Below, in pieces: positions 42,603 through 51,240 of a stretch of 64,000 nt of DNA (position 1 is its first letter; every line of letters begins with the position of its first letter). The stretch comes from Macrostomum lignano. Lineage: Eukaryota. The position numbers were made by a program, and so were the translations under genes. The stretch lies in the NCBI GenBank assembly GCA_002269645.1, contig NIVC01000309.1, forward strand, positions 620,001 to 684,000, in the 5' to 3' direction. The notes beneath the pieces were generated by a model. It saw nothing but the letters and a program-made list of their open reading frames with translations, did no database searches and was not told the origin of the DNA.

Positions 42603-45600
42603 CTAGTCCAGCCGTCGTCGCTGCGCCTCCCCAACATCAATTCTGCCACCTTGTCGCAGCCGATCTCCCACCAGGCGAACTTGGCTCTCAATGTTGTCCA
42701 ACTTGCTGGCTTGCTTGGCAGCAATGTTGGCGCACTTTGTGCTCAGCTTCTCCACCGCAGTGCCGTTCGGATAAATTTTGTCGCGCAGGTGTCGCCGCTT
42801 GCCGCGAAATTTGAAGGCCTGATAGCGCAGGAAGCTGCGATAGCGGTCAGAGAAGTTGCGGAATTTCTGCTCCGAAGGGGTCCAGCCCTGCGGCACGGAG
42901 ATCACGGGCGGTTATCAGAAAGTAAGCATACATGCACCCATCTCAATCTCAATGCAATCCGCTCACCCAGCTGACTCCTACACAACCACCTCACTCCTCC
43001 AACGCACCCACCTCACTCCTACGCAACCACCTCACTCCTCCTACGCACCCACCTCACTCCTCCTACGTACCCACCTCACTACTACGTACCGACCCCACTC
43101 CTCCTACCTAAACCCACCTCACTCCTACGCACCCACCTCACTCCTCCTACGCACCCACCTCACTCCTACGCACCCACCTCACTCCTCCTACGCACCCACC
43201 TCACTCCTACGCACCCACCTCACTCCTACGCACCCACCTCACTCCTCCTATGTATCCACCTCATTCCTAAATACCCACCTCACTCCTCCTACGTACTCAC
43301 CTTACTCTTACGCACCCACCTCACTCCTCCTACGCACCCACCTCACTCCTCCCACGTACCCACCTCACTCCCCCTTCGCACCCACCTCACTCCTTCTACG
43401 CATCCACCTCACTCCTCCTACACACCCACCTCACTCCGCTCAACCATCCCATCTCCACCCAACCCACCCAGCCCATCCGCCAAACCTGTGCTCTGGCCCT
43501 CCGCCGCCGATAATAGAAGCTCCATAGCAGCGGCATGAACAGCATCTCGAGCACGTTAACGGGCGGCGGGGTCAGCCAATGCCGCTCGTATTGGATCATC
43601 AGCTTGGCCTTGGACAGGCGCCAGATGTCGAAGGCGCGTTCGCTTTTCTCGGCCACGGTGAGGCTGAACTTGGCGATGAGCATGTTGGTCATGACCAGAA
43701 ACACCAGCAGGATAACGAATACCAGGGCGTTGGCATACAGCTGAATTTTTTTTTATTATGTTCATTATGTTTGTGGTGGGATTATGTGGCTGTGGGAACA
43801 ACTTGAGTATAGGGAAACGGGTAAAACGGCCCCTGCTGAGGACGGCCATAATTCAAGCGATTTCTTAGCTTTCCACAATAATTGATGGTCTAAGTGCACT
43901 TTACGGCACTCACTGAAGGACCCTGAGGGGCAGCGGCACTCACTGAAGAACCCTCAGGGGTAGTGGCACTCACTGAAGGACCCTCAGGGGTAGCGGCACT
44001 CACTGAAGGACCCTCAGGGGTTGCGGCACCCCTCGAAACACCTTAGTCTTTGTGCTTACCTTCCTGAAGAAAAGCACCGAGTCGGAGACCACTGCCGCCT
44101 CCTCGCTGGCGACAGTGCCATTGCTTCCAAGAAAAGTGTCCAACTCGTCCATAAGCTTGGTCTGCTCGCCAGGCAAGTCCATCTCCAGCTGGCCGAAGGT
44201 GAGAAAGAAGCCCCGAACCGCCACCTGTCGCATGAGCAGGTACCAGTCCCGGTTGGGCCGGGGGCAGAGCAGATTGACAACCAAGAGGCCGAACAGGCCG
44301 ATTATGATGCAGTTGATGCACAGGAAAGGCGGCAGGTCCCTGAGAAACAGCGAGCGCATCATGCTGACTGTCGGCCCGATCCAGTGAAACGGTCTCAGGT
44401 AAGACAGCAGTCTCAGACCCAGGGCTACTATGGCAAAGCCGGTGAAAAAGTACAACTGCTCAGATGAGTTGTCCGTTGACAGCATGATGCAGGCTGTGAC
44501 GCCAGGAATCAGAATCACAATCAGATCGATGGCGTTCCAGCGATCCGTGCGGAAATAGGTGAGCAGTGAGCGGGCCAGCACGTATAACAGGAAAATAAAA
44601 TTTATCGGCATTAGTAGAAGACCCGTTGTCAGCTTTCGATAGGCGCCTGTCAGATTTGAGAAATTAGACTGTTTAAATACCGAGTACAAATTCGTGGGCT
44701 GTCAGAGCCAATGAGCGATAGACTCGGGAGTGAGATGTCTGTCGGGGCCAATCAGCGATAGACGGGGAGTGAGGTGTCTGTCGGAGCCAATCAGCGATAG
44801 ACTGGGGAGTGAGGTGGCAATCAGAGCCAATCAGCGATAAACTGGGGAGGGAAGGCATCTTGTCTGTAAAACCTATAAACTAAGAGATTGGGGGTTGCTG
44901 TTGGCCAATCTAATCCAACAGGGGAGTGCTCAAAAAAGCCAGCAGCCATTCAGAAGAAGCGGGTTAAACAAGGCACAAAAACGAACCGACTCCGCAAGTT
45001 CCGCAGCAGCCGTCTCCGCCGACGCAGCACTTGCAGTTGCACCGCCTGCTGTAGAATTTGGCGCAGAATTGGTGGGAAAATTTCTGATTGCGCCGCATCG
45101 CGTCCCAAACTTCCGGCATCTCCTGGCAGAGAAAGCCGGCCGAGAAGGCCATGAGCAGGGTGACCTCGAGCCACTTAGTATTTGGCAGCGGCCCGAACAC
45201 GGCCAGGCGGCAGTACATCACCATGAACAAGGCGTAGCTCAGGAAGTCCAAGAAGTAGCGGCCAATCAGCGGCAGAGTGGCGGCCCGTCTGCCTTTTGGC
45301 CTCGGAGGCATCGCGCCGCTGCCGAGCCAGGCGCGATCGACGAAGTCGTTCAAGCACTTGGTTGAGAACACCTAGGAATGCGGAGTGAGGGTAATAACTA
45401 AATAACTAACTAACTGACTAACTAACTAACTAACAAACTAACAAACAAACTAACTAACTAACTAACTAACAAACAAACAAACAAACAAACAAACTAACTA
45501 ACTAACTAACTAACTAACTAACTAACTAACTAACTAACTAACTAACTAACTAACTAACTAACTAACTAACTAACTAACTAACTAACTAACTAACTAACTA

Positions 45601-51240: not shown

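Follow-up and report, generated by a model that had tools for sequence, protein, structure and literature searches.

The window analysed here, a stretch of 64,000 nt from the Macrostomum lignano assembly GCA_002269645.1 (contig NIVC01000309.1, positions 620,001 to 684,000, forward strand), contains on its minus strand a channel gene of 10 exons, which together make up 3477 nt and encode, in one uninterrupted frame, a protein of 1158 aa, referred to as the window protein. M. lignano is a free-living macrostomorph flatworm. The gene model was assembled from open reading frame (ORF) pieces, and all of its exon borders are GT..AG. A previous sequence-only reading had placed here, at 42603-51240, a chimeric transient receptor potential (TRP) channel with an ankyrin-repeat N-terminus on a TRPM-type core. 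The stop is indeed at 42603 and the ATG at 51009, the upper bound of 51240 taking in 5' untranslated region and an upstream ORF. Taking all of the evidence together, we consider it likely that this is an intact, expressed and constrained gene for a subunit of an ankyrin-bearing TRPM-like channel, belonging to a family so far seen only in Platyhelminthes in which ankyrin repeats stand in the place of the SLOG domain.

Exon 1 (50875..51009, minus strand as are all that follow; aa 1-45) begins with the ATG at 51009 and encodes an N-terminal helical segment, modelled by AlphaFold2 (AF2) with low confidence (predicted local distance difference test, pLDDT, 38-56). The first ankyrin repeats, about four helix pairs by count, are encoded by exon 2 (49773..50189, aa 46-184), more by exon 3 (48835..49058, aa 185-259; weak Pfam Ank_5 and Ank_4 matches and AF2 helix pairs) and the final ones by exon 4 (48165..48477, aa 259-363; Pfam Ank_2 and Ank_5), which also includes a 'LIDP...ALP' motif. 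The N-terminal half of a helical linker, helical in AF2, is in exon 5 (47420..47695, aa 364-455), and the part of the linker resembling TRPM homology region (MHR) 4 is in exon 6 (46088..46687, aa 456-655), which includes MRQFDLVP (aa 516-523; 46507-46484). Exon 7 (44987..45371, aa 656-783) encodes the pre-S1 'AWLG' (W670), S1, S2 (E739/E742) and a Cys-rich stretch, and exon 8 (44060..44646, aa 784-979) an extra hydrophobic helix, S3, S4, the S4-S5 linker, S5, the pore helix, the FGQ filter and the pore loop. S6 (N998), the TRP helix (W1019), LTPPPVNVL and post-TRP helices fall in exon 9 (43486..43740, aa 980-1064), and rib-like helices and a long terminal helix that is pole- or coiled-coil-like are encoded by exon 10 (42603..42887, aa 1065-1158 and the stop).

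When the window protein was scanned against Pfam, only ankyrin families were found, within aa ~49-340 (exons 2-4; Ank_2 E = 2e-11), with the best of these matches in exon 2 (Ank_2/Ank/Ank_3 at aa 82-153). The exon 2 repeats also match chains of designed ankyrin repeat proteins (DARPins) and of ankyrin-1/2 in the PDB, and their helix pairs are modelled by AF2 at pLDDT 80-89. The AF2 model of the full-length protein (pLDDT 72, predicted TM-score 0.68) has about 8 helix-pair ankyrin repeats at aa 52-345; hence, the location in exons 2-4 given in the sequence-only reading was right and its count of about 7 was slightly low. No Pfam match to LSDAT_euk (SLOG or MHR1-2) was obtained for the window protein, even at E <= 10, and none to Nudix, kinase or TRP_2 domains, the protein ending at aa 1158, as had been predicted for the Nudix and kinase domains.

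All of the motifs that had been singled out in the channel core, namely the E..E/N..D site, IGPTVSMM, FGQ and a TRP box with PPP, were found at the expected positions. The S2 part of the putative Ca2+ site is QEMPEVW (E739/E742) and the S3 part RWNAIDL (N821/D824); S4 has an Arg (R862), the S4-S5 linker is WIGPTVSMM (G874/P875), the filter is TFGQLEMD (aa 933-940, FGQ at 934-936), S6 has an Asn (N998), and the TRP helix FDIWRLSKAKL (W1019) is followed by LTPPPVNVL, with PPP at 1037-1039. In an alignment of ankyrin (ANK) family members, described below, with canonical TRPMs, W670 of the pre-S1 AWLG is invariant and E739, N821, D824, R862, G874, P875, N998 and W1019 are each at least 90% conserved. 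At the C-terminus, AF2 places helices at aa 1078-1100 and 1108-1143, and the alignment to TRPM4 in the PDB reaches aa 1128; the longer helix agrees with the coiled coil proposed previously, its heptad pattern being judged by eye.

Hydropathy and AF2 reveal the six expected transmembrane (TM) helices plus one extra hydrophobic helix at aa 789-812. This helix, LTTGLLLMPINFIFLLYVLARSLL, follows the Cys-rich CNCKCCVGGDGCCGTCG (aa 766-782), in which 8 of the 17 residues are Cys, and together they form an S2-S3 insertion of roughly 45 aa (aa 766-812, window 44561-45041) lying across the junction of exons 7 and 8, where the exon 7 donor, TCG|GTTCGT, is atypical. The insertion is absent from the paralogues compared and is specific to the window protein. 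As the Cys-rich stretch is beside the membrane, one may speculate that it is a palmitoylation cluster accompanied by a membrane-associated helix.

A single close relative of the window protein was found among 5.8 billion proteins. This protein, P0001 (BOX15_Mlig003738g1, 'hypothetical protein, partial'), is also from M. lignano, has 1171 aa, is 99% identical to the window protein and starts 39 nt upstream of the ATG of the window copy. The word-index search of the 5.8 billion proteins used a query lacking the ankyrin domain and found only the self cluster because the index is insensitive. The exon junctions of P0001, which join the ankyrin and TM exons, are identical to those of our gene model, and the same exon 7 donor is used. 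The annotation of GCA_002269645.1 rests on a transcriptome that was assembled from RNA-seq data with genome guidance (StringTie, TACO and TBONE, with TransDecoder ORFs; Wudarski et al. 2017, PMC5730564), and P0001 is thus a transcript-derived model linking the ankyrin and TM exons. Hence, that one transcript spans both sets of exons, on which the sequence-only reading had depended, is supported, and the same order is found in the relatives.

The window copy was compared with the locus of P0001 (L001, same assembly). The ten exons align without indels over 3477 nt, every splice site is kept, and the two copies are separated by 36 synonymous and 9 non-synonymous differences (dN/dS = 0.081), of which 2 synonymous and 1 non-synonymous are in the Cys-rich part of the insertion. 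The exons are 98.7% identical with 0 gap columns and the introns 94.1% identical with 1497 gap columns. The indel-free exons, the low dN/dS and the contrast between exons and introns lead us to conclude that the gene is real, intact and under purifying selection. The presence of two copies fits the known redundancy of the M. lignano assembly (PMC5730564).

An ankyrin gene and a truncated channel gene might have been read as one, or the copy might be decaying, and for this one could cite the atypical exon 7 donor, the 'partial' flag on P0001, the absence of a Pfam Ion_trans match in the window protein and the report that about 7% of assembled M. lignano transcripts are polycistronic precursors (PMC5730564). 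However, the frame is continuous over 10 exons, there are no indels, the dN/dS is 0.08 and the splice sites are conserved. Moreover, the ANK-linker-TM order recurs in dozens of relatives, including one 1537-aa product on a 5.1-kb contig (see below), and the linker that starts right after the last ankyrin repeat is conserved with the paralogues. We regard an artefact as extremely unlikely, and a pseudogene or a fusion was rejected in view of the intact frame, the dN/dS, the conserved splice sites and the same order in the relatives.

In order to find the relatives, aa 364-1158 were used as query in an exhaustive HMMER scan (E <= 1e-3), in which 1.84 billion cluster representatives yielded only 123 proteins, the top matches being proteins with ANK and Ion_trans domains. 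The best non-self match is 27% identical (E = 6e-28), and the best-matching stretches cover the TM/TRP region only. The first named matches that do not include ankyrin repeats are vertebrate TRPM2-like proteins. The source was looked up for 30 of the 122 non-self clusters, and 27 of the 28 ANK-group representatives among them are platyhelminth, from M. lignano, Opisthorchis, Dicrocoelium, Fasciolopsis, Echinostoma, Schistocephalus and Protopolystoma. The nearest relatives are therefore more than 25 divergent ANK + channel clusters found in M. lignano, trematodes, cestodes and one monogenean, and the window protein, read previously as a chimera, is no one-off but belongs to a flatworm-wide family.

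BLAST clustering of the TM regions separated these proteins into three groups (A, B and C), a block of canonical TRPMs, and the window protein and P0001 on their own. Group A (about 21 clusters, e.g. A0A1I8HFS7 and PAA74666) is the best profile partner of the window protein, and all of its members that were looked up are from M. lignano except for one contig from a metagenome-assembled genome (MAG). Some group A paralogues are at least 1700 aa long, with ANK matches over several hundred residues. Group B (PAA66045 and PAA51132) is also from M. lignano, and its members include ANK, PF25508 (the TRPM2-like domain; 28-46 bits, cutoff 27) and Ion_trans domains and are without TRP_2. Group C comes from neodermatan parasites, examples being Schistocephalus A0A0V0J4K6 and Fasciolopsis KAA0186122, both auto-named 'TRPM7'. 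The canonical TRPM matches from the same scan carry LSDAT_euk, and of the six basal matches in the canonical block that were checked, four carry SLOG, TRPM2-like and Ion_trans domains and two (P0081 and P0086) are not TRPM-type. The family is defined by N-terminal ankyrin repeats, about 8 or more of them, a linker motif of the RQFD(L/I/V)P type and a TRPM-like core, in the same order in dozens of paralogues and orthologues, and all three are present in the window protein. However, the window protein is far more divergent than its flatworm relatives, sharing no more than 27% identity with them and having no BLAST link of at least 120 bits to other clusters; we take it to be a very divergent member of group A, the group that has expanded in Macrostomum. 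It also includes fewer ankyrin repeats than many group A members and is the sole carrier of the S2-S3 insertion.

Three of the proteins recovered deserve separate mention. The MAG contig in group A is 5.1 kb long, was deposited as part of a 'Kangiellaceae bacterium' and encodes a 1537-aa ANK + TRPM-like channel (P0021); most probably, eukaryotic DNA has contaminated a bacterial bin here, and as the contig is too short to hold much intron, it suggests that the ankyrin and channel parts are encoded together. P0086 (1615 aa) combines WW, PA14, F5/8-type-C, ANK and C1 domains with an Ion_trans core, and P0012, a group A protein of 1988 aa from M. lignano annotated as 'EF-hand domain-containing', extends about 850 aa beyond the channel core. 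Shuffling of domains around the channel core seems to be frequent, judging from P0086 and P0012.

The core of the window protein is TRPM-like, as sequence, profile and structure comparisons all put TRPM first and TRPC5, TRPN and TRPV1 far behind. In a phmmer search of PDB chains, TRPM5, TRPM4, TRPM2, TRPM1, TRPM8 and TRPM3 rank first (E 4e-10 to 1e-4), all of TRPM1-8 precede TRPV3, which like TRPV2 has an E of about 1e-4, and TRPC, NOMPC and TRPA1 are not among the best 60 matches. Using hhalign on the TM+TRP core, the window protein scored 185 against group A (E = 2e-25), 144 against canonical TRPM, 42 against TRPV1 and 25 against TRPC5 (3.4%, not significant), the TRPC5 reference sequence being 100% identical to 7x6c. 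Group A scored 306 against canonical TRPM, 75 against TRPC5 and 44 against TRPV1, and group B scored 268 against group A, 457 against canonical TRPM, 102 against TRPC5 and 82 against TRPV1. TRPN was compared over the pore-S6-TRP segment only because a NOMPC-fragment query yielded fragments of no more than 135 aa. In this segment, the window protein scored 82 with group A, 68 with TRPM, 26 (26%) with a 50-sequence TRPN profile and 25 with TRPC5, and group A scored 131 with TRPM and 47 with TRPN.

When the full-length AF2 model was compared to known structures with Foldseek, NOMPC (5vkq) had the best E-value and Drosophila TRPA1 was third; the TRPM2 chanzyme and many TRPMs were also listed, the TRPMs with higher TM-scores. 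A second model lacking the ankyrin repeats (aa 345-1158, pLDDT 68) produced a different ranking, the best 50 matches all being TRPM3, TRPM2, TRPM7, TRPM4 or TRPM5 (790-898 columns, TM-scores 0.42-0.51) and including no NOMPC, TRPC or TRPA1. The NOMPC and TRPA1 matches are thus owed to the ankyrin domain, since they are gone once it is removed.

These comparisons bear on whether the window protein could be a divergent member of one of the ankyrin-bearing families, TRPN/NOMPC, TRPA or TRPC, with its likeness to TRPM arising from convergence or from search bias. The first and third places of NOMPC and TRPA1 with the full-length model, the NOMPC-like proportions of the long (at least 1700 aa) group A paralogues and the instability of the deep topology in the neighbour-joining (NJ) tree described below would be consistent with this. 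Set against them are the disappearance of all three from the best 50 when the ankyrin repeats are left out, the pore-S6-TRP scores of 68-82 for TRPM and group A versus 26 for TRPN and 25 for TRPC5, the TM-core scores of group A (306 versus TRPM and 75 versus TRPC5), the lead of TRPMs in the PDB ranking and the presence in the relatives of the TRPM2-like domain and not TRP_2. We consider membership in any of these families very unlikely, which is in line with the TRPM-type core proposed in the sequence-only reading, and the phmmer and ankyrin-less Foldseek searches do not favour TRPA.

TRPC has an analogous architecture. TRPC4/5 are laid out as N-terminal ankyrin repeats, a linker helical domain, the TM region, the TRP helix and C-terminal helices, and hallmarks of TRPC are an EWKFAR TRP box and a TRP_2 domain. 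TRPC5 (7x6c) shares with the window protein an E..E in S2 (GEIKEMW), 'WN..D' in S3 and a PPPFN after the TRP helix. Hence, the E..E/N..D site does not serve as a TRPM-specific sign, as the sequence-only reading had used it. TRPC was rejected despite this analogous architecture and site, because the TM core scores 25 with TRPC5, the single TRPC reference, and 144 with TRPM, there is no TRP_2 domain and the TRP helix reads DIWRLSKAKL. In NOMPC, too, an ankyrin array precedes the channel part, which includes a TRP helix, and its likeness to the window protein hinges on the ankyrin domain. TRPN carries about 29 ankyrin repeats, and it was rejected given the about 8 repeats of the window protein, its pore-S6-TRP score of 26 and the absence of NOMPC from the best 50 matches of the ankyrin-less model. 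TRPA has a long ankyrin array and is without a classical TRP box; it was third with the full model and was not found in the best 50 without the ankyrin repeats or in the best 60 by phmmer, the Foldseek and phmmer searches being those that cover TRPA.

Between the ankyrin domain and the membrane core, the linker of the window protein aligns with those of group A paralogues over its entire length. The landmarks they have in common are LIDP..ALP, LL.(T/M)RQF(D/E)L(I/V)P.CL, GP.F.C and ..LF(A/S)T.C...W, the first of these lying directly after the ankyrin repeats at aa 345-356 with D347 and L355 invariant in the group A alignment. In hhalign comparisons, the linker of group A (including the window protein) matched that of groups B/C (97.2%, E = 4e-11, aa ~488-675), and the linker of groups B/C matched the MHR4 region of TRPM (99.5%, E = 4e-22), whereas the direct comparison of group A to TRPM was colinear but not significant (5.7%). 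Homology of the linker to TRPM MHR4 would therefore be transitive, via groups B/C. A search of the PDB with the linker profile retrieved no TRPM, only chance matches at E about 1. Though segments matching both MHR3 and MHR4 had been reported in the sequence-only reading, only MHR4 stands, by this indirect route, and MHR3 is not supported by sequence, the exon 5 segment (aa 364-455) having no Pfam or PDB sequence match. In the Foldseek comparison, the alignments of the ankyrin-less model to TRPMs run for roughly the length of the entire query with its linker, though coverage of exon 5 is not resolved at the level of residues, and it is this length that suggests that the exon 5 segment may correspond to MHR3.

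The motif [RQEKSP][QEK][FY][DE][LIVM][LIV]P was present in 25 of 124 sequences scanned, namely the window protein, P0001 and 23 members of groups A, B and C. None of the canonical TRPMs has it. We read this RQFD(L/I/V)P-type motif as a probable shared derived character of one ANK-linked lineage.

A Scoredist/NJ tree was built from 98 sequences and 310 columns, with bootstraps of 60 and 100 replicates. The window protein is at the base of group A, and groups B+C lie among SLOG-bearing TRPMs. Group C is monophyletic in 100% of replicates, B+C in 92-95%, and A with the window protein in 57-73%. TRPC5 falls between the branch made up of group A and the window protein and the remainder; it was outside the ingroup in only 6 of 100 bootstraps and, along with TRPV1, in only 2 of 60. 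The deep nodes were judged to be long-branch noise and, hence, this tree was not used for deep placement. A tree built from normalised group-profile scores, which should be less prone to long-branch effects, has the form (TRPV1, (TRPC5, (((window, A), (C, B)), (M1..M8)))), without support values, and agrees with the linker motif and with a single ANK clade adjoining TRPM. The normalised score of group B versus the core TRPMs is 0.30, and those of the SLOG-bearing subclades M2 and M3 are 0.16-0.31. The ANK clade may be nested within TRPM or be sister to it.

Canonical TRPM and TRPS channels carry SLOG and no ankyrin repeats (Himmel et al., PMC7306681; 2026 mollusc survey, PMC12980990), as had been stated for TRPM in the sequence-only reading. 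The loss of the ankyrin repeats was inferred to precede the TRPM-TRPS split, which is itself older than the split of Cnidaria and Bilateria, in a survey of 14 phyla that did not include Platyhelminthes (Himmel et al., PMC7306681). Because TRPM and TRPS predate that split and the ANK clade was seen only in flatworms, we favour, as on balance the probable course of events, a single swap of SLOG for ankyrin repeats in a TRPM-type gene of the flatworm lineage, after which the family would have expanded greatly in Macrostomum.

The ANK clade could alternatively be an old lineage, sister to TRPM+TRPS or situated between TRPC/TRPN and TRPM, in which the ankyrin repeats are ancestral. The group-profile tree sets the clade outside all of the sampled SLOG-bearing subclades M1-M8, in the NJ tree the branch with group A and the window protein lies beyond even TRPC5, and the order ANK, helical linker, TM, TRP helix and C-terminal helices resembles the TRPC layout, with the PPPxN after the TRP helix like the PPPFN of TRPC5. 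A stem lineage that retained its ankyrin repeats is also conceivable, given that Himmel et al. place their loss before the TRPM-TRPS split. However, an origin this old would require loss from almost every phylum but Platyhelminthes, the only one to which the looked-up representatives assign the clade; group B is as close to the core TRPMs as the SLOG-bearing M2 and M3 are; the sequence tree has groups B/C in the midst of SLOG-bearing TRPMs; and the basal position is likely to be an artefact, as the branches are long. We therefore consider an ancient origin unlikely. If it were correct, the clade would be an unrecognised TRP family recording an intermediate state before SLOG replaced the ankyrin repeats, and it would become possible to test directly whether, as inferred, the repeats had gone by the time of the TRPM-TRPS split.

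A number of points count against the view that this is a TRPM-like channel gene with ankyrin repeats in the place of SLOG. The window protein has no significant Pfam match to Ion_trans or to PF25508, the S2-S3 insertion adds a hydrophobic helix without an assigned topology, and the exon 7 donor is atypical. The references were thin, consisting of one TRPC, one TRPV1 and TRPN fragments, with no TRPA profile and no labelled TRPS, and canonical TRPMs were among the sequences aligned for AF2, so that the predicted fold may lean towards TRPM. To these are added the first and third places of NOMPC and TRPA1 with the full-length model, the absence of TRPMs from the PDB matches of the linker profile, the non-significant direct match of the group A linker to TRPM, and, in the NJ tree, the position of TRPC5, the rarity of its falling outside the ingroup and the modest bootstrap values for group A with the window protein.

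Beyond the ankyrin domain, the best matches are canonical TRPMs, among them zebrafish TRPM5 (7mbt), TRPM4 (6bcj), the TRPM2 chanzyme (8sr8) and TRPM3 (9n1m). The window protein has in common with TRPM2/4/5/8 the acidic/polar site in S2/S3, the S4 Arg, GP, FGQ, the S6 Asn, the TRP Trp and the rib and pole helices. At the position of the second S2 ligand, TRPM has Q and the window protein E. The window protein also differs from canonical TRPMs in having about 8 ankyrin repeats in the place of SLOG/MHR1-2, in being without Nudix or kinase domains and in its S2-S3 insertion, and core identity is about 13-27%. Hence, it has the TM-core affinity of a canonical TRPM, while SLOG is absent and ankyrin repeats are present. 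It is equally distinct from TRPS, which has SLOG, often Nudix, a divergent TRP box 2 and no ankyrin repeats (PMC7306681), as no SLOG or NUDIX Pfam match was found in the window protein and ankyrin repeats are present. In the choanoflagellate 'TRPW' (bioRxiv 10.64898/2026.06.15.732245), the N-terminal domain is a different one, mostly WD40 and not ankyrin, and the hosts are not animals; one member includes SLOG and NUDIX, and the presence of SLOG or WD40 in TRPM and TRPW was poorly predicted by phylogeny. TRPW may be taken as a precedent for exchange of the N-terminal module.

By analogy with characterised channels, the window protein would most likely be one of four subunits in a non-selective cation channel that is modulated by Ca2+ and regulated through its ankyrin domain. 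Four subunits would assemble with a contribution from the C-terminal helix, as in TRPM2/4/5/8. Ca2+ would be bound by the predicted E739/E742/N821/D824 site in the S1-S4 domain (the voltage-sensor-like domain, VSLD), and this site would be coupled to the S6 gate by way of the S4-S5 linker and the TRP helix. The FGQ filter and the acidic residues that follow it would form a non-selective cation pore, Ca2+ permeability not being predictable, and the ankyrin domain, in the position of MHR1-2, might provide protein interaction, tethering or allosteric input instead of the sensing of nucleotides by SLOG.

The surroundings of the gene are rich in repeats. Eight of its nine introns (window 42964-50679) are each dominated by a different tandem array, among them a 13-mer x37 (intron 1), 12-mers (2), a 14-mer x19 (3), a 15-mer x27 (4), (TAAC)169 (6) and a 22-mer x22 (9), and the introns of the two gene copies differ by gaps of about 1.5 kb, the exons being gap-free. 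Upstream of the channel gene, the C-terminal exon of a P4-type phospholipid flippase (PhoLip_ATPase_C) is at 57480-57881 on the minus strand. The GenBank copy, L001, is flanked on one side by a gene for a 1192-aa P4-ATPase (L001 1-6318) and on the other by an RPGR1_C-domain gene, and the flippase neighbour common to both indicates that the two copies are syntenic duplicates or haplotypes. A non-LTR retrotransposon (LTR, long terminal repeat) occupies 59558-63620 on the plus strand (GC 58-62%), with an ORF2 that encodes an Exo_endo_phos endonuclease and reverse transcriptase domains (61194-63620); the ORF1-like frame of 436 aa ahead of it has no Pfam match. A pol fragment of an LTR-retrotransposon is at 23219-25693 on the plus strand, with RVT_1 and RT_RNaseH at 24443-25693; the ORF upstream of these domains (23219-23812) includes a CCHC-like 'CPAFGKECKKCGRKNHFAQIC' motif and has no Pfam match. 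Kilobase tracts of low complexity or minisatellite sequence at 7930-13100 and 16758-20800 yield long spurious ORFs, for example (SLSP)n, (CLSV)n and (ESHHL)n, and both GC and AT skew are locally strong at 8-10 kb of the window.

Public databases already include sequences of the family, labelled 'hypothetical protein' or 'ANK_REP_REGION domain-containing' or given the automatic name 'TRPM7', and a passing remark on ankyrin repeats in TRPM-like matches (PMC10725132) is the sole mention that we found, so that the earlier caution that such proteins might have been sighted before was justified. Ankyrin-bearing TRPMs are not mentioned in flatworm TRP reviews or in the papers on TRPM_PZQ. As far as we found in the literature searchable up to 2026, the feature was glimpsed and not analysed.

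The flatworm family indicates that animals can exchange the cytosolic module with which a TRPM-type channel senses its input, and it lends itself, as a natural experiment, to asking how SLOG/MHR1-2 takes part in gating. Because members occur in liver and intestinal flukes, tapeworms and a monogenean, and are kin of the TRPM family, to which TRPM_PZQ, the target of praziquantel, belongs, they are candidates for parasite-specific channels of pharmacological use. M. lignano, in which transgenesis is possible, provides a model in which ankyrin-TRPM channels can be studied.

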